Assembly: GCA_002269645.1 (NCBI GenBank)
Contig: NIVC01001106.1
Span: 1 to 64,000 of the forward strand
Source: Macrostomum lignano
Taxonomy: Eukaryota
DNA: 64,000 bases
Direction of reading: 5' to 3'
The position numbers and the translations under genes were made by a program. The stretch's first letter is position 1, and each line of letters begins with the position of its first letter. Shown here piece by piece: positions 29,082 to 46,450 of the stretch. Below the pieces are notes generated by a model. It searched no databases, was not told where the DNA came from, and was given only the letters and a program-made list of their open reading frames with translations.

Positions 29082-29644
29082 CTGAATCAATGAATTGACG
29101 TTGGGGGTGTTTCCTGATACTTAAATATGTATATATTGTTAACTTATTTTATATCAGACATTTAAGAAAACTAGAATTCCTAGAAACCAATAAAAGATAC
29201 CCGAAGCCAATTCTAATATCCTGAAGACAAATAGTATTCTAATTCTAAGAAAGCTATAAAATTCACTGGAAACTAAAAAGCCTTCCAGGAAACTCCGTGA
29301 AATTCTAAGAAACCCAGGTAAATAAAAACAATTAATTCTAGGAAAAAACAGTAGAATTTTAGCAAAAACTAGCTTCCAAAAAACCATGTGAAATTCCAAG
29401 AAACGCAATTAAAAACTCGGGAACCGTGTCAGATTCCAAGAAACTTAATCAAATCTTATAATTCTAAGAAACAGATATGAAATTCCAGGAAACCTAATAC
29501 GAAATTCAATCTGCGCGTTTTGCTGCGTCAATAGATTCCTGGAAACCTTGCAGAATTCTTAGAAACAATGCAAAACTGTTGTTCAATCAAATAAAATTCT
29601 AGGAAACTGCAGGTACATTGTGCACACAGAAGTCCCCGCCGCAC

Positions 29645-29876
29645 CAGGAAGTGATCAACGTTAACTCCTCGATTGAGGTGCGACTCGCCGATGAGCCGCA
29701 AGGTCTCCGCTGAGGCCTCCGGATGGGAGCTGCCCAACGAAGCGATCACCGAGTCCATCGAGTTCACCACGCGGAGGCCGTGGGCGCGCAGGGCGGGCAG
29801 CCCGGCCAGCTCAGACAGGGGCCGGTCGCGGAAGTTCGAAAACTTCACCTGCACCTCCGGGTACAGCTGGAACAGC
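29645..29876 (-). CDS. Globin exon 2 (LFQLYPEVQVKF...LRAHGLRVV...IGESHLNRGVNVDHFL)
   Basis: C2 Pro, CD1 Phe, distal E7 His and proximal F8 His; acceptor CCCTCAG|G and donor CTG|GTGCGG; 232 bp. Confidence 0.92.
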
Positions 29877-29934
29877 CTGAGGGATGCGGGCGGCCGCTGA
29901 TAAAGCAGATGCGCTTGATGACACTTAAATTGTC

Positions 29935-32710
29935 GCCCCTGACACACTTGAGTTGTTTCCACTGACACACTTGACTTGTTTCCACTGACACACTTGACTT
30001 GTTTCCACTGACACACTTGACTTGTTTCCACTGACGCACTTGACTTGTTTCCCCTGACACACTTGACTTGTTTCCCCTGACACACTTGACTTGTTTCCAC
30101 TGACACACTTGACTTGTTTCCCCTGACACACTTGACTTGTTTCCACTGACACACTTGACTTGTTTCCCCTGACACACTTGACTTGTTTCCCCTGACACAC
30201 TTGACTTGTTTCCCCTGACACACTTGACTTGTTTCCCCTGACACACTTGACTTGTTTCCCCTGACACACTTGACTTGTTTCCCCTGACACACTTGACTTG
30301 TTTCCACTGACACACTTGACTTGTTTCCCCTGACACACTTGGCTTGTTTCCACTGACACACTTGACTTGTTTCCACTGACACACTTGACTTGTTTCCACT
30401 GACACACTTGACTTGTTTCCACTGACACACTTGACTTGTTTCCACTGACACACTTGACTTGTTTCCACTGACACACTTGACTTGTTTCCCCTGACACACT
30501 TGACTTGTTTCCACTGACACACTTGACTTGTTTCCCCTGACACACTTGACTTGTCGCTCCTGACACACTTGACTTGTTTCCCCTGACACACTTGACTTGT
30601 TTCCCCTGACACACTTGACTTGTTTCCCCTGACACACTTGACTTGTTTCCACTGACACACTTGACTTGTTTCCCCTGACACACTTGACTTGTCGCTCCTG
30701 ACACACTTGACTTGTTTCCACTGACACACTTGACTTGTTTCCCCTGACACACTTGACTTGTTTCCACTGACACACTTGACTTGTTTCCCCTGACACACTT
30801 GACTTGTTTCCCCTGACACACTTGACTTGTTTCCACTGACACACTTGACTTGTTTCCCCTGACACACTTGACTTGTTTCCCCTGACACACTTGACTTGTT
30901 TCCACTGACACACTTGACTTGTTTCCACTGACACACTTGACTTGTTTCCCCTGACACACTTGACTTGTTTCCACTGACACACTTGACTTGTTTCCACTGA
31001 CACACTTGACTTGTTTCCCCTGACACACTTGACTTGTTTCCCCTGACACACTTGACTTGTTTCTCCTGACACACTTGACTTGTTTCCCCTGACACACTTG
31101 ACTTGTTTCCACTGACACACTTGACTTGTTTCCCCTGACACACTTGGCTTGTTTCCACTGACACACTTGACTTGTTTCCACTGACACACTTGACTTGTTT
31201 CCACTGACACACTTGACTTGTTTCCACTGACACACTTGACTTGTTTCCACTGACACACTTGACTTGTTTCCACTGACACACTTGACTTGTTTCCCCTGAC
31301 ACACTTGACTTGTTTCCACTGACACACTTGACTTGTTTCCCCTGACACACTTGACTTGTCGCTCCTGACACACTTGACTTGTTTCCCCTGACACACTTGA
31401 CTTGTTTCCCCTGACACACTTGACTTGTTTCCCCTGACACACTTGACTTGTTTCCCCTGACACACTTGACTTGTTTCCACTGACACACTTGACTTGTCGC
31501 TCCTGACACACTTGACTTGTTTCCACTGACACACTTGACTTGTTTCCCCTGACACACTTGACTTGTTTCCACTGACACACTTGACTTGTTTCCCCTGACA
31601 CACTTGACTTGTTTCCCCTGACACACTTGACTTGTTTCCCCTGACACACTTGACTTGTTTCCCCTGACACACTTGACTTGTTTCCCCTGACACACTTGAC
31701 TTGTTTCCACTGACACACTTGACTTGTTTCCACTGACACACTTGACTTGTTTCCCCTGACACACTTGACTTGTTTCCCCTGACACACTTGACTTGTTTCC
31801 ACTGACACACTTGACTTGTCGCTCCTGACACACTTGACTTGTTTCCCCTGACACACTTGACTTGTTTCCCCTGACACACTTGACTTGTCGCTCCTGACAC
31901 ACTTGACTTGTTTCCCCTGACACACTTGACTTGTTTCCACTGACACACTTGACTTGTTTCCACTGACACACTTGACTTGTTTCCACTGACACACTTGACT
32001 TGTTTCCCCTGACACACTTGACTTGTCGCTCCTGACACACTTGACTTGTTTCCCCTGACACACTTGACTTGTTTCCCCTGACACACTTGACTTGTTTCCC
32101 CTGACACACTTGACTTGTTTCCCCTGACACACTTGACTTGTTTCCCCTGACACACTTGACTTGTCGCTCCTGACACACTTGACTTGTTTCCACTGACACA
32201 CTTGACTTGTTTCCCCTGACACACTTGACTTGTTTCCACTGACACACTTGACTTGTTTCCCCTGACACACTTGACTTGTTTCCCCTGACACACTTGACTT
32301 GTCGCTCCTGACACACTTGACTTGTTTCCCCTGACACACTTGACTTGTTTCCCCTGACACACTTGACTTGTTTCCACTGACACACTTGACTTGTTTCCAC
32401 TGACACACTTGACTTGTTTCCCCTGACACACTTGACTTGTTTCCCCTGACACACTTGACTTGTTTCCACTGACACACTTGACTTGTCGCTCCTGACACAC
32501 TTGACTTGTTTCCCCTGACACACTTGACTTGTTTCCCCTGACACACTTGACTTGTTTCCCCTGACACACTTGACTTGTCGCTCCTGACACACTTGACTTG
32601 TTTCCCCTGACACACTTGACTTGTTTCCCCTGACACACTTGACTTGTCGCTCCTGACACACTTGACTTGTTTCCCCTGACACACTTGACTTGTTTCCCCT
32701 GACACACTTG
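29935..32710. repeat. 22-bp minisatellite CTGACACACTTGACTTGTTTCC(C/A), filling globin intron 1
   Basis: ~125 copies; stop-free on the minus strand, giving three spurious 926-1066-aa ORFs. Confidence 0.97.
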
Positions 32711-32878
32711 AGTTGGTGCCCCTGGCACTTGAATTTGTGCCTTAACTTAGCTCGAAAAGTGGCAGCCCTGATAGTCACACGATGATTGAGACCTACTGAC
32801 ACACCAAAACTGAGACAATTCCTGAAGAATTCATGTAGCATCCAGCAGCTAGCGAGTACAATCTCACTCGCTACTCAC

Positions 32879-33427: not shown

Positions 33428-34022
33428 GCTCCCGCTCACTCACCACTGCCTTCACGCCGCCCCCGATCCCTTCACACTGCTCCCGCTCACTCACCACTGC
33501 CTTCACGCCGCCCCCGATCCCTTCACACTGCTCCCGCTCACTCACCACTGCCTTCACGCCGCCCCCGATCCCTTCACACTGCTCCCGCTCACTCACCACT
33601 GCCTTCACGCCGCCCCGATCCCTTCACACTGCTCCCGCTCACTTCACACTGCCTCCGCTCTCTTCACACTGCTCCCGCTCTCTTCACACTGCCTTCACGC
33701 CGCCCCCGCTCTCTTCACACTGCTCCCGCTCCTTTCACACTGCTCCCGCTCACTTCACACCCCTTTCACACCGCCCCCGCTCCCTTCACACTGCTTCTGC
33801 TCACTTCACACTGCCCCCGTTCTCTTCACACTGCTCCCGCTCCCTTCACACTGCCCCCGCTCCCTTCACACTGCCCCCGCTCCCTTCACACTGCCCCCGC
33901 TCTCTTCACACTGCTCCCGCTCTCTTCACACCCCTTTCACACCGCCCCCGCTCCCTTCACACTGCTCCTGCTCACTCACCACTGCCTTCACGAAGCCCCC
34001 GCTCCCTTCACACTGCTCCCAC
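33428..34022. repeat. 51-bp repeat (3 copies) decaying into ~20-bp CCCGCTCCCTTCACACTG subunits
   Basis: CCCGCTCACT at 33431, 33482 and 33533. Confidence 0.85.
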
Positions 34023-34228: not shown

Positions 34229-34861
34229 TCACTCATCCGAAATCTGCATTTTTGAGGTGGCCCTGTCAACCATCATCAGCTTCTTGAGCTCGCCATCGCC
34301 TCTACCGTCTGCAGCTTCGTCATCGGCGACTTCGTTGACTCCGGCCGACTTGCCGAATACTTTCAACTGCCGGTGGAAGCACAGCTCGTAAACCAGCGAG
34401 CCCAGCGCGCAGCCCAGATAGGGCCCGACTAGCGGCGCCCAGAAGGCGCGCGGCCCGACGGCCGGCAGGAGCGGCAGGCCGTAGCCAGCGGCCAGGCTGG
34501 CGAACAGGCGAGGCGCAAAGTCCCTGGCCGGGTTGAGGGTGCAGCCGGACACGGGCAGGGTGCACTGCAGCAGGCAGGTGGCCGACAGGCCGACCAGCAG
34601 CGGCTGCAGACCGGTGGCCGGATTTGCGTTGGCGCCGTCGGTCACGGCGCGAACGGCCAGCATGAAGGCGGCGGAGGTGAACAGCTGATTGGCCAGAACA
34701 ATGGACAGACTGGCACTCGGGTGCGGCAGAGTGACAAACACTCCGGCGGTGCCGTTGGCGCCGAAAGCGACACGGCGGCCGCCGTCAATGGCGTCCAGCA
34801 TCGGGGCGTAGAATGTGTACACTGCGCCAGCGCCAGCGAACGCGCCAAGGTATTGGGCGGC
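34229..34861 (-). CDS. aqp: Aquaglyceroporin exon 2
   Basis: Acceptor TTTCGTCGATAG|GCC; AQYLGAF..G, TAGVFVTLP, second NPA box GCTLNPARDFAPRLF, FWAPLVGPYLG. Confidence 0.92.
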   Translation of the reverse strand, partial: AAQYLGAFAGAGAVYTFYAPMLDAIDGGRRVAFGANGTAGVFVTLPHPSASLSIVLANQLFTSAAFMLAVRAVTDGANANPATGLQPLLVGLSATCLLQCTLPVSGCTLNPARDFAPRLFASLAAGYGLPLLPAVGPRAFWAPLVGPYLGCALGSLVYELCFHRQLKVFGKSAGVNEVADDEAADGRGDGELKKLMMVDRATSKMQISDE

Positions 34862-34894
34862 CTATCGACGAAATATTAAAGTGCAGTACAACCG

Positions 34895-35975
34895 GCGACA
34901 GTAGAACAGGAAAGACATCCGGTAGAACAGGTGAGAAATTCAGTAAAACAGGTGAGACACTCAGTTGAACTGTTGAGACATTCAGTAGAACCGGTGAGAC
35001 ACTCAAGAGAACTGGTGAGACACTCAAGAGAACTGGTGAGACACCCCGTAGAACAGGTGAGACACTCAGTTGAACTGTTGAGACACTTAGTAGAACAGGT
35101 GAAACACTCAGTCGAACAGGTGAGACATTGAGTAGAACAGGTGAGACATTGAGTAGAACAGGTGAGACACTCAGTAGAACTGTTGAGACTCAGCGGAACA
35201 GGTGACACCCGGTAGAACAGGTGAGACACCCGGTAGAACAGGTAAGACACCCGGTAGAACAGGTGAGACACTCAGTAGAACAGGTTGGACATTGAGTAGA
35301 ACAGGTGAGACATTAAGTAGAACAGGTGAGACACTCAGTATAACAGGTGAGACATTGAGTAGAACAGGTGAGACGTTGAGTAGAACCGGTGAGACATTCA
35401 GTAGAACAGGTGAGACACTCAGCGGAACCGGTGAGACACTCAGTAGAACAGGTGAGACACTCAGCGGAACTGGTGAGACACTCAGTAGAACAGGTGAGAC
35501 ACTCAGGAAGACACTCAGTAGAACAGGTGAGACACTCAGTAGAACAGGTGAGACACTCAGTAGAACAGGTAAGACACTCAGTAGAACAGGTGAGACACTC
35601 AGTAGAACAGGTAAGACACTCATTAGAACAGGTGAGACACTCAGTAGAACAGGTAAGACACTCAGTAGAATAGGTGAGACACTCAGTAGAACAGGTGAGA
35701 CACTCAGTAGAACAGGTGAGACACTCAGGAAGACACTCAGTAGAACAGGTGAGACACTCAGTAGAACAGGTAAGACACTCAGTAGAACAGGTGAGACACT
35801 CAGTAGAACAGGTAAGACACTCATTAGAACAGGTGAGACACTCAGTAGAACAGGTAAGACACTCAGTAGAACAGGTAAGGCACTCAGCGGAACTGGTGAG
35901 ACACTCAGTAGAACAGGTGAGACACTCAGTAGAACAGGTAAGACACTCAGTAGAACAGGTGAGACACCCAGTAAA
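34895..35975. repeat. 21-bp minisatellite GAGACACTCAGTAGAACAGGT in the aquaporin intron
   Basis: Read directly. Confidence 0.93.
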
Positions 35976-36084
35976 ACCGGTAATCTAACGGTACTAAAGA
36001 CAGTCAGCACATTTTCAGTGCTAGCTCTAAACCAGAAGTTTCAAGGAATTCTACAGACTGACGCATTCCGCTGGTAGAACCCAC

Positions 36085-36408
36085 CTGATAGACCAGGAAG
36101 TCGAGCAGGGTCATCCGGCCCACGGCCAGCAAAGCCAGCGACACGGCCGGATTGACGTGGCCGCCAGACACGCCGAAGCTGGCGTACACAGCCAACGCCA
36201 GCGCCAGGCCGGACCCGATGGTGGCCATCAAGACGGAGGCGTCCTCTGCCCCGCCGCCTGAACTGCTGCTGGAGTGCCGCGAGACCAGGCAGTTGGCTGA
36301 GGCGGACAGGCACAGGGACACCAGCAAGAAGGTGGCGGCCAGTTCGGCCAAGGCTACCCGGCAAAGCCGGCTGCCAATTCGAAGGCGATCAAAAACTGGC
36401 ATGGCCAT
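36085..36408 (-). CDS. aqp: Aquaglyceroporin exon 1
   Basis: LAELAATFLL, first NPA box GVSGGHVNPAVSLA; donor CAG|GTGGGT in phase 0; spliced product 318 aa. Confidence 0.92.
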
Positions 36409-36837
36409 TTTTCTGCTTAGCCTTCAGCTAAAAGCGCCACTCTCCACTGTTTGCTTTTGCGTTCCGGCAAGCTTAAATAGCCGGCGGTAATTAGTTGGAT
36501 TGCTCAGTGATTTGCGCGCATGACTTGCTTGCGAGATTTTTTATGACCACTGACTGTTAGGCAAGCACAGGAAAAATGAGTTGTTTTGTTAATTTATGCA
36601 ACCAGTGTTCCCCCCCCCCCTGAGAGATTGCTCGACACCCGAGAGCATTTATTGCGATCCAGTTTGGAGAGAGAGAGACAAAGAGTACACGGCGCACGAT
36701 TTTTTTGTTTAAATGGTTCGGATTGCGTAATTCAGTTATTACTTTTTTACACGACCTCCCAACACCGGCGCAGACCGGTACTCGGTATATATTTATAAAT
36801 AATTACAATTAGAAAAAAAAGCTAATCAGAGTTCAAT

Positions 36838-37788
36838 TTAAGCTTTCTTCTGCTTGTCCTTGCGACAGTCCGGGCAGTACCATTTGCCTTTGGGCTCAGA
36901 GGTGAGCTTCACGCAGCGGAAATGGAACCACTCGATGGCGCAGCGGGCATTGTCGCAGGCGATCATCTCGCCGAATGAGACTTTGTTGCAGATGCAGTAG
37001 CGTCGGGACTCCTCATTAGTTGATCCGCCTTGCTGCTGCTGTTGCTGGCTCTTTGACGCCTTCTGCTGCGACTGCTGCTGCTGGCGCTTCTTCGGTGCGC
37101 TGGCTGGCGTCTGCTGCTGCTGCTGACGGACTCGCCGACGCTTCGACGATGTCGCCGCAGTTGCCGTTGCTGCCGCCGCGCCGCCACCGACTGAAGTCAG
37201 CAGATCCCGACTACTGCTACTGGCATTTGAAGATGCCGCTTCATCTTTGTCGGATGCTGCGGCAGCGGCGGCGGCGGCCGAGCGTCGTCTCTCACCGGCC
37301 GAGGCTCGCTTCTGATGATGCTGGCGCCGCTGCTGCTGCTGTGTCGACGAGGCCGGACTGGCAGCCCTCGCCGCGGCGGCCGCAGCTTCAATCCTAGCCA
37401 GCAGGTTTCTCTTGCCATCATCCAGCCGAGTGCGGCGGCCGTCGAGCAGCTCCTGGACGAGGCCGGCTAGGCGCATTTTCTCCTCGCCGAGCTCCTGTAG
37501 CCGCGCTACGGCGCGCTGCACTGAGACGCCGACAGCAGCTGACGACTCTGACGAATTCGACGAAGCTGCTAGACGTTCTAAATCGGCCACCGAGGCGTGG
37601 CAGCGAGCGTCGAGCTCTCGGTACTGGGATAGGCAGGCCTGCAGATCGCCTGGCAGCGATTCGCAACAGTCCAGCACGTCCTCCAGGTAGGTGACCAGCA
37701 GGTGCCACTCAGGTGAGCCCGTCTCGAGGCCCCCGATTGCTGCCGAGGTCAGGGCGGTCGCGCCGTCGCGGTCTGCCACAGTCGCCGA
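36838..37788 (-). CDS. ing: Inhibitor of growth (ING) family protein, main coding exon; no in-frame ATG before the N-terminal domain
   Basis: N-terminal [17 protein letters not shown]; C-terminal PHD finger [28 protein letters not shown]...[10 protein letters not shown]; acceptor TCTCCTGTCACTCCGCAG|TCG at 37788. Confidence 0.92.
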
Positions 37789-37847
37789 CTGCGGAGTGAC
37801 AGGAGATACACGAAATCCTGAACAGTCAGGTCAGGGAACTTTTGAGC

Positions 37848-38922
37848 CTCCTATCCTTTATCCTTGATATCCCATCCTTTATCCTCAATATACCATCCTT
37901 TATCCTTAATATCCCATCCCTTATCCTCAATATCCCATCCTTTATCCTTAATATCCCATTCTTCATCCGCAATATCTATCCTTTATCCTCAATATCCCAT
38001 CCTTTATCCTTAATATCCCATCCTTTATCCTTAATATCCCATCCTTTATCCTCAATATGCCATCCTTTATCCTTAATATCCCATCCTTTATCCTCAATAT
38101 GCCATCCTTTATCCTTAATATCATATCCTTTATCCTCGATATCCCATCCTTTATCCTTAATATCCCATCCTTTATCCTCAATATCCCATCCTTTATCCTC
38201 AATATGCCATCCTTTATCCTCGATATCCCATCCTTTATCCTCAATATGCCATCCTTTATCCTCGATATCCCATCCTTTATCCTTAATATCATATCCTATA
38301 TCCTCAATATCCCATCCTTTATCCTCGATATCCCATCCTTTATCCTCAATATCCCATCCTTTATCCTTAATATCATATCCTTTATCCTCAATATCCCATC
38401 CTTTATCCTTAATATCCCATCCTTCATCCGCAATATCTATCCTTTATCCTTGATATCACATCCTTTATCCTCAATATGCCATCCTTTATCCTTAATATCC
38501 CACCCTTTATCCTCAATATGCCATCCTTTATCCTCAATATCCCATCCTTTATCCTCAATATGCCATCCTTTATCCTCGATGTCCCATCCTTTATCATTAA
38601 TATCATATCCTTTATCCTCAATATCCCATCCTTTATCCTCGATATCCCATCCTTTATCCTCAATATGCCATCCTTTATCCTTAATATCCCATCCTTTATC
38701 CTTAATATCATATCCTTTATCCTCAATATCCCATCCTTTATCCTCAATATGCCATCCTTTATCCTCAATATTCCATCCTTTATCCTCAATATTCCATCCT
38801 TTATCCTTAATATTCCATCCTTTATCCTTAATATCCCATCCTTTATCCTCAATATGCCATCCTTTATCCTTAATATCCCATCCTTTATCTCCATAATCCC
38901 ATCCTTTATTCCCAATATCCCA
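37848..38922. repeat. 21-bp minisatellite ATCCCATCCTTTATCCTCAAT
   Basis: Read directly. Confidence 0.95.
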
Positions 38923-39489
38923 TCTTAAGTCCTCTACAGTCAACTCTACATCTACATGAAAATATACAAAAAGTAAATAATGAAAATTTTGCAGAATCGT
39001 AAGTGGAGGGAAGTCAAAAAAAGGTGGGACCAATTCAAAACCTTTAAATCTGACAACTCAACATTACGAAGTTTGTCACAGAATGTGTTCGGGGAGCATT
39101 TGAGTCAAGCACTAACCTGGCTAGGCAGACAATAGCATATAAAAAATGAAAGTATCAGACAATAAAGAAAGAAAGTCAATAAAAAGCGTACAGCGGATTT
39201 CAGTAGTGCTAGTAGCGTTTTGCGAGAGAAAAGTTTTCATTAATTTCTGAATTTAAGTTCATTTGCAAAAAGGCATAAAAACATGTTACGAATACGAAAG
39301 AATCACGTTTCACCTTAGCTGAATATTTGTAAAACTGAAGCCCACTGCTCACCTCATCTCGATTCTGACGATTTTAACATAAAATTTCAACATTCAGGTA
39401 CCTGGATTTCTAACTAAAATCGAAATTTTAATGTCTATTAAGTTTTTACGAGTTTAAACTAACGACAGAGGTTTCACAAGTTCCTAAGA

Positions 39490-40282
39490 ACCATCAAGGA
39501 CTCCCCCTATTCACTCAAAACCATCATGGACTCCCCCTATTCACTCAAAACCATCATAGACTCTCCCTATTCACTCAAAACCATCATGGACTCTCCCTAT
39601 TCACTCAAAACCATCATAGACTCTCCCTATTCACTCAAAACCATCATGGACTCCCCCTATTCACTCAAAACCATCATAGACTCTCCCTATTCACTCAAAA
39701 CCATCATGGACTCTCCCTATTCACTCAAAACCATCATGGACTCTCCCTATTCACTCAAAACCATCATGGACTCTCCCTATTCACTCAAAACCATAATTGA
39801 TTCCCTATTCACTCAAAACCATCATGGACTCTCCCTATTCACTCAAAACCATCATGGACTCTCCCTATTCACTCAAAACCATCATGGACTCTTCCTATTC
39901 ACTCAAAACCATAATTGATTCCCTATTCACTCAAAACCATAATTGATTCCCTATTCACTCAAAACCATAATTTGATTCCCTATTCACTCAAAACCATAAT
40001 TGATTCCCTATTCACTCAAAACCATAATTGATTCCCTATTCACTCAAAACCATAATTTGATTCCCTATTCACTCAAAACCATAATTGATTCCCTATTCAC
40101 TCAAAACCATAATTGATTCCCTATTCACTCAAAACCATAATTGATTCCCTATTCACTGAAAACCATAATTTGATTCCCTATTCACTCAAAACCATAATTG
40201 ATTCCCTATTCACTCAAAACCATAATTTGATTCCCTATTCACTCAAAACCATAATTTGATTCCCTATTCACTCTAAACCATC
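39490..40282. repeat. 30-bp array (CATGGACTCTCCCTATTCACTCAAAACCAT) changing into a 28-29-bp array (AATTGATTCCCTATTCACTCAAAACCAT)
   Basis: Read directly. Confidence 0.93.
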
Positions 40283-40302: not shown

Positions 40303-40693
40303 TCACTCGCCCCTAGGTAGTTGGCCATTTTTCCCGGTCCAGAGCATTGGATCAAATTTGACATCGCAGCCCATCGCCAGCAGAGCCGCTTTGGCCTCGT
40401 CTTTGCAGACGGCAAGCAGGCCGTTCATCAGCGACTCCATGCCGTGCGTCAGCAGCGCGGGCCGAACCAGGCCGCCAGAATCCGCTGAGTCGTCGCGAGC
40501 GGCCACATTGCGAACGCACAGGCAGAGCTGGCGCATCAGGGCGGAGTCTGGCCGGTGAAGAGCGGCCAGCAGGGACAGCAGCGCCGGGCCGGGCAGCTCG
40601 GCGGCAAATCGGCGGGCCGTGGCCGGCTGACGGAGGCACAGGTTGGCGGCCAGGCCTAGGAACTGGTGCGCCACCGGGGCCTGCTTGGCGAAT
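40303..40693 (-). CDS. armc6: Armadillo repeat-containing protein 6-like, exon 3
   Basis: Acceptor TTGCGCAG|A in phase 2; C-terminal CKDEAKAALLAMGCDVKFDPMLWTG resembles the ARMC6 end. Confidence 0.8.
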
Positions 40694-40705
40694 CTGCGCA
40701 ATTTT

Positions 40706-41312
40706 GGGGCGGATAACTGGGGACTGAATGGGGCGGATAACTGGGGACTGAATGGGGCGGATAACTGGGGACTGAATGGGGCGGATAACTGGGGAGTGAA
40801 TGGGGCGGATAACTGGGGGTAAAGGGGGCGGAAAACTGGAGGTTGAAGGGGTGGAAACTGAGGGTGAAGGGGGCGGATAACTGGGGAGTGAATGGGGCGG
40901 ATAACTGGAGACTGAATAGGGCAGATAACTGGAGACTGAATAGGGCGGATAACTGGGGAGTGAATGGGGCGGATAACTGGGGGTAAAGGGGGCGGAAAAC
41001 TGGAGGTTGAAGGGGGTGGAAACTGAGGGTGAAGGGGGCGGATAACTGGGGAGTGAATGGGGCGGATAACTGGAGACTGAATAGGGCAGATAACTGGGGA
41101 GTGAATGGGGCGGATAACTGGGGAGTGAATGGGGCGGATAACTGGAGACTGAATAGGGCGGATAACTGGGGACCGAATGGCGCGGATAACTGGGGGTGAA
41201 GGGGGCGGAAAACTGGGGGGTGAAGGGGGCAGAAAACTGGGGGTTGAAGGGGGCGGAAAACTGGGGGTGAAGGGGGCGGAAACTGGGGTGAAGGGGGCGG
41301 AAAACTGGAGGA
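40706..41312. repeat. 24-bp G-rich minisatellite GGGGCGGATAACTGGGGACTGAAT (ARMC6 intron 2)
   Basis: Read directly. Confidence 0.9.
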
Positions 41313-41351
41313 CTCAAAAGCTGGCGGGCTACCAGCTGCAGTAGAACTCAC

Positions 41352-41680
41352 TTGGTAGCCACATCCAGCAGCACGGGCAGGTGCTCAGCGGCCGCCCGTT
41401 TAACCTGATCGTTGCGGGCCAGATTGCGCAATAATCCCATGCCGGAGGCGGCCAGCTGAGGCTCCTGGCTGTGCGCGTAAATTGCGCCAACAATGAAATC
41501 GCAGGCGCCCAGTTCTAAAGCTCGCTGACAGAATTCGTCGCGCACGGCCAGACAGGCTAAGGTGTCGAACACTCGGGCCACTGTGCGGGCCGACTCTGGC
41601 CGATTGTAGCGGCGGCACAGGCGCAGCAGTAGGGCGAGAGCCGGGGTCTCCGACATCACTTGGCGAGCTCGTTCGTGAGC
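41352..41680 (-). CDS. armc6: ARMC6-like exon 2
   Basis: Acceptor CTGGCCAG|GCT CAC GAA; LACLAVRDEFCQRALELG, LRNLARNDQVK; donor AA|GTGAG. Confidence 0.85.
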
Positions 41681-41717
41681 CTGGCCAGAGCATTGGTTAG
41701 TGGTATAAGTTTACCCA

Positions 41718-41962
41718 TTGGATCACTGAACCCTAACCAATGATCACTGAACCCTAACCAATGATCACTGAACCCTAACCAATGATCACTGAACCCTAAC
41801 CAATGATCACTGAACCCTAACCAATGATCACTGAACCCTAACCAATGATCACTGAACCCTAACCAATGATCACTGAACCCTAACCAATGATCACTGAGCC
41901 CTAACCAATGATCACTGAACCCTACCCAATGATCACTGAACCCTAACCAATGATCACTGATC
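41718..41962. repeat. 21-bp minisatellite CCAATGATCACTGAACCCTAA (ARMC6 intron 1)
   Basis: Read directly. Confidence 0.93.
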
Positions 41963-41964
41963 CC

Positions 41965-42918
41965 CACTCAATAATCACACAAAACTACTCCATAATCACA
42001 CAAACCTACTCAATAATCACACAAACCTACTCAATAATCACACAAACCTACTCAATAATCACACAAACCTACTCAATAATCACACAAACCTACTCAATAA
42101 TCACACAAACCTACTCAATAATCACACAAAACTACTCAATAATCACACAAAACTACTCAATAATCACACAAAACTACTCAATAATCACACAAAACTACTC
42201 AATAATCACACAAAACTACTCAATAATCACACAAAACTACTCAATAATCACATCAACCTACTCAATAATCACACAAAACTACTCAATAATCACACAAAAC
42301 TACTCAATAATCACACAAACCTACTCAAATACCACACAAACCTACTCAATAATCACACAAAACTACTCAATAATCACACAAAACTACTCAATAATCACAC
42401 AAAACTACTCAATAATCACACAAAACTACTCAATAATCACATCAACCTACTCAATAATCACACAAAACTACTCAATAATCACATCAACCTACTCAATAAT
42501 CACACAAAACTACTCAATAATCACACAAAACTACTCAATAATCACACAAACCTACTCAATAATCACACAAACCTACTCAATAATCACACAAAACTACTCA
42601 ATAATCACACAAAACTACTCAATAATCACACAAACCTACTCAAATACCACACAAACCTACTCAATAATCACACAAAACTACTCAATAATCACATCAACCT
42701 ACTCAATAATCACACAAAACTACTCAATAATCACACAAAACTACTCAATAATCACACAAACCTACTCAAATATCACACAAACCTACTCAATAATCACACA
42801 AAACTACTCAATAATCACACAAAACTACTCAATAATCACACAAACCTACTCAAATACCACACAAACCTACTCAATAATCACACAAAACTACTCAATAATC
42901 ACACAAACCTACTCAAAA
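41965..42918. repeat. 21-bp minisatellite AATAATCACACAAA(A/C)CTACTC (ARMC6 intron 1)
   Basis: Read directly. Confidence 0.95.
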
Positions 42919-43011
42919 ATCTACACAGTGCTCAAGAGCTCGCATTACCAAACAGGCACTCCCAGTTAGGAGCTCCCAAGACAGCTGATATCACGGACAT
43001 CCCATACTCAC

Positions 43012-43821
43012 CTGGCCAACAACCGCCCGAACATCATCGTCCAGAGTGAGCAGGCGAAACAGCCGACAGGCCTGACAGATCAAAGCTTCCCTTCCTGGCT
43101 GAGTTCTCATCAGTCGAGCCAGCATTGGCACCAGGCCGTTGAGCACCAACAGCTGACGGTTGGCCTCGTTCAGCACACACGAGCTGCCAAGGACGCCTAG
43201 CAGGGCGGTGAGCTCAGCAGCCGATTCAGGCGTGCCTTCGTCAGCCGCCTCCTCCTCTTCGGCTTCAACACACGCATCGCCAGTCTCGGCCACAGCATTT
43301 TCCGCTACTACTACTTCTCCATCAGCAGTAGTATCAGCCACTCCAGCCAATAGCTTAGCCCTAGCCAGCAGGCCGATCAGCTGATTAGAATTCAGCGCAT
43401 CCGATTGCTGTTTCAATAGGCGTCGGAGACAGCGCAGCGCGGCGCAGGCTACGGAGGAATCCGACGGCTCAGAAGCCAGGCTCAGCAGTGCGGGCGCGAC
43501 GCGAAGCTGGGCAGCCAGAACCCGATGAGGCAAGCCGGCAGCTAGCTGATGGGACAGCTCGCCAATCTGGCTGAGTAGCTGGTCCTTGGTTTGAGTAGCC
43601 ACAGAGTCAGCTGACAACACGACAGCGTTAACAGCCAGCACAAGAGGATGCCGACCCTCCGGATAAAGCGGCAAGTCCTGCACTATCAAACCAATAGAAG
43701 CTTTCTGAGCCTCCAGCTGTTTAACAGCATCTTCGATTGCTTCATCTGGCGGCATGTCGAATTCGTCAATATTCTCGCGTACCAGACTGTTGTAGGTGTC
43801 CTGCGACACTGGCCGGGACAT
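43012..43821 (-). CDS. armc6: ARMC6-like exon 1
   Basis: N-terminus VSQDTYNSLVRENIDEFDMPPDEAIEDAVKQLEAQ matches the ARMC6 signature; CRLFRLLTLDDDVRAVVGQ|AHERARQ continuity across the intron; donor CAG|GTGAGT. Three exons give ~509 aa. Confidence 0.85.
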
Positions 43822-44002
43822 TTCAAGCTGATTTTGAGCTGCAATAAATCCAATAGATAGTCATAATAAGCTTACAATACTACTGAAATTAAAGTAGCAT
43901 AAAAACTGGAATCACAAACCTGTACAGTAGACGAGAGTAATGCTACTTTCAGTAGCAAAACTAGCGTTTTAATGATTTTTTAAGTCAACTGAAAATCGAG
44001 AA

Positions 44003-45907: not shown

Positions 45908-46450
45908 TCAGCCTTCCGGCCGGAATTTGCGCTGCTCAGCGATGGCCCGCAGCTTCTCGGCGAAGCTGGCCCGCAGCGCGCCCAGCCGGTTTCGCTGCTC
46001 CTCCGCTCGCGTCGCTTTTGGCGCTTTGGCGCCGCCCAGAGCCAATTGCAACTCGGCTGCGGCGAGCTTCTCGCGCCTACGCTGGCGCTCTAATTGGCGC
46101 CTGGCGCGCGATTGACCCCGGCCAAACACCAGCGCTCTGGCGGCGTCCTCTGTCTCTGCAGCCGGCGTGTCCTCGGGTTTAGCCTTAGTCCCTTCAGCTT
46201 GAGCCTCAGCAGCATCAGGCTTGGCCGTTGAGCCACTTTTCTTATAACTGACTGTCACCCAGCCGTCAGAGTCTGGCAGTCGGGACTGGCGTCGCTCCTC
46301 TTTGTCAGCCGCTTCGTAATACCTGGCTAACAGCAGCTGGCAGTCCTGCAGCACAGAGTCCTCCTGCTGTCTGGGCACCAGCTGCAGCGTGTCCCTAATG
46401 TACTCTTGGCGCATTGATTCAATTTGCTGTATAGCGTTTGCAGACTGCAT
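45908..46450 (-). CDS. rrp7a: Ribosomal RNA-processing protein 7 (RRP7A)-like C-terminal domain, 180 aa
   Basis: LPDSDGWVTVSYKK motif and terminal RKFRP, both typical of the RRP7 C-terminal domain; no RRM seen. Confidence 0.7.
   Translation of the reverse strand: MQSANAIQQIESMRQEYIRDTLQLVPRQQEDSVLQDCQLLLARYYEAADKEERRQSRLPDSDGWVTVSYKKSGSTAKPDAAEAQAEGTKAKPEDTPAAETEDAARALVFGRGQSRARRQLERQRRREKLAAAELQLALGGAKAPKATRAEEQRNRLGALRASFAEKLRAIAEQRKFRPEG

Follow-up and report, generated by a model that had tools for sequence, protein, structure and literature searches.

A conserved ING1/2-like gene in the flatworm Macrostomum lignano lacks a genomic start codon and probably takes its initiator AUG from the spliced leader

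How is a conserved gene translated when the genome holds no start codon in front of its conserved sequence? The question is raised by an ING1/2-like open reading frame (ORF) of Macrostomum lignano, found on contig NIVC01001106.1 of assembly Mlig_3_7 (GCA_002269645.1). The stretch that we analysed (henceforth the window) comprises positions 1 to 64,000 of this contig, and window coordinates are therefore those of the record. The ORF occupies a single exon on the minus strand, is terminated by TAA (36840–36838) and encodes a protein of the ING1/2-type family, with both an ING N-terminal domain and a C-terminal PHD finger present and with ING1 and ING2 as best named matches. In protein searches the PHD finger was 65–77% identical to those of ING1/2 proteins. 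The whole protein was 100% and 99% identical to two M. lignano entries, one of which is BOX15_Mlig015258g3, described as partial, and the members of its 90% clusters were all NCBI genome-derived. Only two in-frame ATGs occur in the ORF, at codon 105 (37476) and at codon 275, and since the former lies inside the conserved ING N-terminal domain it cannot start the full-length protein. On the 5' side the frame is shut by a TGA. A first-pass annotation of the same DNA had put this stop near 37829 with no ATG between it and the domain; the TGA is real and no in-frame ATG appears until codon 105, the position of the stop being 37833–37831, 2–4 nt away from the one proposed.

Table 1. Features of the ING locus and its flanks in the window (a slash marks a splice site).
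Feature	Coordinates	Strand	Remarks
MIP/aquaporin gene, 323 aa, downstream of ING	34229..36423	-	acceptor ttttag/CTGAAGG, exon start 36427; own ATG 36408, 19 nt in
ING1/2-like ORF, single exon, 316 codons + TAA	36838..37788	-	no initiator ATG of its own; P0001, P0002 and P0121 annotated as partial
PHD finger, Pfam PF00628, residues 265-308	36865..36996	-	24.6 bits (cut-off 24)
ING N-terminal domain, Pfam PF12998, residues 34-127	37408..37689	-	E=3.6e-12; profile positions 1-100 of 102
First in-frame genomic ATG (codon 105)	37474..37476	-	within the ING N-terminal domain
Pyrimidine-rich tract and CAG 3' splice acceptor, AG 37790-37789	37789..37810	-	proposed SL trans-splice acceptor; same in 3/3 genome copies
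In-frame TGA stop	37831..37833	-	15 codons 5' of the ING exon start; 5' limit of the ING frame
21-bp minisatellite, about 51 copies, 52 ATGs	37849..38924	-	ends 59 nt 5' of the acceptor AG; presumed outron
Unique AT-rich spacer	38925..39504	-	holds the ATGAG/GTGAGC donor, and ATTAAA at 39432
30-bp minisatellite immediately 3' of the ARMC6 stop	39505..40281	-	copy number varies among genome copies
ARMC6-like gene, 514 aa, upstream of ING	40303..43836	-	annotated 5' end at acceptor; exon start 43838; own ATG 43821, 17 nt in

The relatives of the protein indicate where it used to begin. When its N-terminus was aligned with five ING1/2 proteins, the M-LNQAAVEAL of the orthologues (in which the Leu after the Met is invariant) fell on residues 12–21. 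Residue 12 thus corresponds to the ancestral initiator Met and is not a Met here, while the frame stays open for another 11 codons, exactly as far as the acceptor. As coding homology runs from residue 12, the start must lie upstream of it, where the genome has no ATG. Judged by this alignment, the genomic ING gene has lost its ancestral initiator.

The same arrangement is found in two more near-identical copies, on NIVC01000445.1 (L001) and NIVC01001105.1 (L002), in keeping with the recent polyploidy known for this M. lignano line. The ING protein differs among them by one substitution and one in-frame codon deletion, and the ORF is intact throughout (313–316 codons). Identity is about 99.6% in coding and non-coding sequence alike (4 differences in 948 nt of coding DNA, 2 in 580 nt of unique non-coding DNA), which leaves a test for selection, whether on ORF or phase, without power. 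An ING orthologue from a Macrostomum other than M. lignano was found neither in word-indexed protein searches nor in an exhaustive HMMER search of 1.84 billion representatives; the word-indexed search with the N-terminus only missed the ING protein itself, and its blank result is uninformative. One candidate orthologue, P0127 (63% identity), was rejected as a frameshift-ridden fused model of ARMC6, ING and MIP (884 aa), probably from an older, error-prone assembly. Another fused model, P0126 (A0A1I8IJB7, 457 aa), joins ING to the MIP/aquaporin gene; both models are artefacts and could mislead homology searches.

The open frame begins at a splice acceptor. Its context is tatctcctgtcactccgcag/TCGGCGACT, with pyrimidines at 15 of the 20 nt that precede the AG, and its last six bases, CCGCAG, depart at one position (5 of 6 matched) from [T/C]TNCAG, the motif reported as the leading one for trans-splicing. 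The first-pass annotation had described this acceptor as lying exactly in phase 0 with the ING ORF, which is what we see: the exon starts at 37788 and 316 open codons follow. By chance alone, about 26–48 random codons would be free of ATG with p about 0.5–0.65, and an acceptor falls in phase 0 one time in three. Neither feature is rare by chance, so what gives the observation its weight is biology (a conserved, intact gene without an initiator) rather than statistics.

Existing gene models begin at or close to the same place. The annotated ING coding sequences of the three genome copies are all 5'-partial and lack a Met; P0121 begins with the Ser equivalent to 37788, and P0001 and P0002 with the Thr two codons later (37782), 6 nt past the acceptor. 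The UniProt entry A0A1I8IJB7, from the older assembly and modelled independently, also begins SATVADRDG. In the Mlig_3_7 annotation (TBONE), the spliced leader (SL) was trimmed from the reads, the reads were mapped and transcription units were cut at peaks of SL reads, after which the ORFs of the gene set were called with TransDecoder (PMC5730564). A 5'-partial TransDecoder ORF begins no more than 2 nt from the end of its transcript. As such ORFs start so near the transcript end, the annotated ING transcripts exclude the TGA at 37833, and by the same token they exclude a neighbouring plausible acceptor at 37817, which would give a different N-terminus. We also considered whether the suffix g3 of the gene name marks the third gene of a transcription unit. 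This was rejected: the prefix names a 95%-identity cluster, g1 to g3 appear to number copies, and the neighbouring genes bear other prefixes.

Could the missing codon be supplied by the leader? The first-pass annotation had made its proposal depend on an organism with SL trans-splicing and a leader ending in AUG, and M. lignano is such an organism: its published SL, 35 nt long (CGGTCTCTTACTGCGAAGACTCAATTTATTGCATG, PMC8629364), has the 3' end ...TTGCATG (PMC8629364, PMC5173321), and 30% of its genes are trans-spliced to it (PMC8629364). When this leader is joined in silico at 37788, the result is an uninterrupted frame of 317 codons with the SL AUG in frame and no stop between. Vertebrate Kozak rules rate the surroundings of this AUG (U at -3, U at +4) as poor. 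An SL RNA gene was not found within the window, where Rfam also gave no matches.

From the arrangement of the DNA and its annotation we infer that the spliced leader is quite probably trans-spliced at 37788 and that ribosomes start ING at its AUG. The same suggestion in the first-pass annotation thereby gains indirect support, from the ATG at the end of the SL, the 317-codon frame, the Met-less annotations and the lack of an in-phase cis exon with a consensus donor (see below). The pre-mRNA would be transcribed together with the upstream ARMC6-like gene as a polycistron, or from a promoter of its own through the 1.1-kb minisatellite. Its CAG acceptor would then be trans-spliced to the 35-nt leader, whose last three bases are AUG, giving the junction ...CAATTTATTGCATG joined to TCGGCGACTGTGG at NIVC01001106.1:37788 (-), and the outron, with about 100 upstream ATGs, would be removed in the same step. 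The leader AUG would come to lie in phase 0 right before TCG GCG ACT, so that the mRNA would read ...UUGC AUG UCG GCG ACU... and yield an ING1/2-like protein of 317 residues. As there is no genomic initiator, full-length protein would be made only from trans-spliced transcripts. A further step would be to suppose that ING output became strictly SL-dependent once the ancestral ATG was lost, and is gated by the efficiency of trans-splicing (e.g. in neoblasts, for which SL trans-splicing of 85% of specific genes has been reported), the phase-0 acceptor having been fixed first and the genomic Met having decayed afterwards, a kind of 'start-codon outsourcing'. We regard this scenario as speculative and rather improbable.

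The obvious competitor to a leader AUG is an ordinary one, brought in by an unannotated cis-spliced 5' exon, in which case 37789 would be mainly a cis acceptor and the annotation would have split the gene at an SL site in its interior. Acceptors of parasitic flatworms are indeed often common to cis- and trans-splicing (PMC12582326), and a consensus donor does exist upstream. A distance of 2514 nt separates the ARMC6 stop (TGA 40305–40303) from the ING acceptor, 1076 nt of them in the 21-bp and 777 nt in the 30-bp minisatellite, and they contain 105 ATGs. They hold a single GTRAG donor, the consensus site ATGAG/GTGAGC (ATG 39357–39355, GT 39352–39351). The first-pass annotation had noted an ATG with a donor near 39350, in phase 2 and out of frame, and so it proved: joined to 37788 this exon gives an out-of-frame ORF of 14 codons, and a script scan found no acceptor downstream of the TGA that matches its phase. 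That annotation had also named a phase-0 upstream ATG exon as the finding that would count against the SL; no such exon with a GTRAG donor occurs in these 2514 nt. The phase-0 ATG/GT candidates are limited to ATG/GTTTTG sites, which are weak and lie within the 30-mer minisatellite, plus a few other non-consensus sites. Given in addition that two annotations begin at the acceptor, a cis-spliced start seems very unlikely to us. We give just as little credence to initiation at a near-cognate codon of the exon, independent of the SL AUG. The GTG at codon 4 (37779) has a good Kozak-like context (GCGACTGTGG, A at -3 and G at +4) and in the alignment the CTG at codon 13 matches the Leu after the orthologues' Met. 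On a trans-spliced mRNA, however, scanning ribosomes would meet the in-frame AUG 9 nt before the GTG, and on one that is not trans-spliced they would face a leader with up to 105 upstream ATGs. Near-cognate starts are in general weak.

Two other readings do without a full-length start altogether. The locus might be a transcribed copy that is untranslated or decaying, for example an intronless retrocopy that has lost its start codon. It is intronless and lacks an ATG, and M. lignano, as a recent polyploid, has many redundant copies. Yet three genome copies and the older assembly all have an intact ORF (313–316 codons), the two Pfam domains are there in full and the phase of the acceptor is exactly that required by the SL AUG; the differences between copies, one substitution and one in-frame codon deletion, also speak against decay, being nonetheless too few to prove selection. 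We therefore think a decaying copy improbable, if slightly less so than a hidden cis exon or a near-cognate start. Translation might instead start at Met105, the first in-frame ATG that the genome provides, and give an N-terminally truncated ING reduced to the half with the PHD finger. The ING N-terminal domain, still recognisable over 94 residues and in a frame that is open and homologous from residue 12, would lose 71 of them by such a start, and we consider it the least credible of all these possibilities.

The neighbours of the gene provide an internal control for initiation at the SL AUG. Like ING, the ARMC6-like and MIP genes are 5'-partial in the annotation, with ends 0–4 nt past an AG acceptor, and each has an ATG of its own shortly downstream. 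If the SL is joined at their acceptors, its AUG would be out of frame and would open upstream ORFs of 51 codons (ARMC6) and 13 codons (MIP) that overlap the gene's own ATG. Within this small sample (n=3), only the ATG-less gene has its acceptor in phase, as expected. How mRNAs such as those of ARMC6 and MIP avoid the leader AUG is a question that the arrangement raises. A separate peculiarity of the ARMC6 acceptor is its context, ATTTATTGCAG (L003 3933–3944; window about 43850–43839, minus strand), which has 10 consecutive bases in common with the 3' end of the SL, ATTTATTGCATG; the likeness could be due to chance or could be a source of mis-assigned SL reads.

These genes belong to a run of five on the minus strand, in the order G-alpha (54028–52512), RRP7-like (46450–45908), ARMC6-like (43836–40303), ING (37788–36838) and MIP/aquaporin (36423–34229), with strand and order the same in all three genome copies. 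SL-resolved operons of M. lignano consist of adjacent genes on one strand, with SL trans-splicing of the downstream gene and a repeat-adjusted intergenic distance below 1 kb (Ustyantsev and Berezikov 2021, PMC8629364). Between ARMC6 and ING, the 2514-nt gap shrinks to about 660 nt once its 1853 nt of tandem repeat are taken out, and about 410 nt lie between the ING stop and the MIP acceptor. This spacing, along with annotated 5' ends that lie at AG acceptors, suggests that ARMC6, ING and MIP may form a polycistron resolved by the SL.

Some other features of the window deserve mention. Minisatellites with units of 20–30 bp are dense in its introns and spacers (33428–34020, 34899–35981, 37849–38924, 39505–40281, 40705–41308 and 41721–42927), and the lengths of the arrays vary among the three genome copies despite the identity of about 99.6% in unique DNA. 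Inside a 21-bp tandem array, ARAGORN made two overlapping calls of tRNA-Pro(agg), 97 nt, at 41758–41917 (minus strand), which we discarded as almost certainly false positives, Rfam being blank there. The annotated RRP7 (faint) protein of 180 aa (45908–46450, minus strand) seems to correspond to no more than the C-terminal part of an RRP7-type protein and may be a 5'-truncated model. At 29528–32841 (minus strand), three overlapping ORFs of about 930–1070 codons in different frames share 3.3 kb, a pattern suggestive of a long region of repetitive or low-complexity sequence.

Initiation at a leader AUG is a mechanism established in flatworms and expected in Macrostomum, and nothing in our reading of the ING locus calls for a new one. 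In Schistosoma mansoni, Cheng et al. (2006) are quoted as finding the SL AUG in frame in 28% of trans-spliced transcripts, with more than 40 cDNAs in need of it (PMC9851317), and this 2006 work is cited for the experimental demonstration of such initiation in Schistosoma (PMC9851317, PMC12582326). In the paper on the genomes of M. cliftonense and M. hystrix, the terminal ATG of the SL is called the translation start codon and was retained in trimming (PMC10468722). The ING gene resembles the Schistosoma mRNAs in its AUG-ending SL, its phase-0 acceptor, the absence of a genomic in-frame AUG before the conserved sequence and the dependence on trans-splicing that would follow for its protein. It differs in belonging to a free-living member of the Macrostomorpha and in being another gene, and whereas the Schistosoma case was tested experimentally, leader joining and initiation are here deduced. 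A start codon supplied in trans by the leader is also what defines the slORFs of nematodes, Oikopleura and trypanosomes (slORFfinder, PMC9851317); those mostly use near-cognate NUG codons and often create new or alternative ORFs, whereas at ING the leader AUG would start a canonical, conserved protein. The likeness to the SL-resolved operons of M. lignano (PMC8629364) lies in the same-strand ARMC6, ING and MIP genes, with 5' ends at acceptors and repeat-filled spacers; the SL AUG as a start codon is not discussed in that paper. The gene itself (Mlig015258) was not found by name in the main texts of the literature searched or in the supplements of PMC5816591.

As a protein, the M. lignano ING has the build of the animal ING1/ING2 readers of H3K4me3, an ING domain at the N-terminus and a PHD finger at the C-terminus, with best matches from insects, amphibians, cnidarians and others. 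Unlike them it is intronless, has a long middle part of low complexity rich in Ala, Gln and Ser, extends N-terminally by 11 residues past the ancestral Met position and lacks a genomic start codon. Only the instance is new: a free-living flatworm in which the gene concerned is a chromatin reader of the ING1/2 type, together with evidence, of the kind an alignment can give, that the ancestral Met of this gene was lost. The case bears on annotation as well. Because the leader is trimmed together with its ATG, ING and similar M. lignano genes are deposited as Met-less 'partial' proteins, and restoring the SL-derived Met would give such proteins their true N-terminus. A conserved regulator that would be translatable only after trans-splicing, in a flatworm that can be made transgenic, would also be a convenient test locus for initiation at the SL AUG outside the parasitic flatworms.
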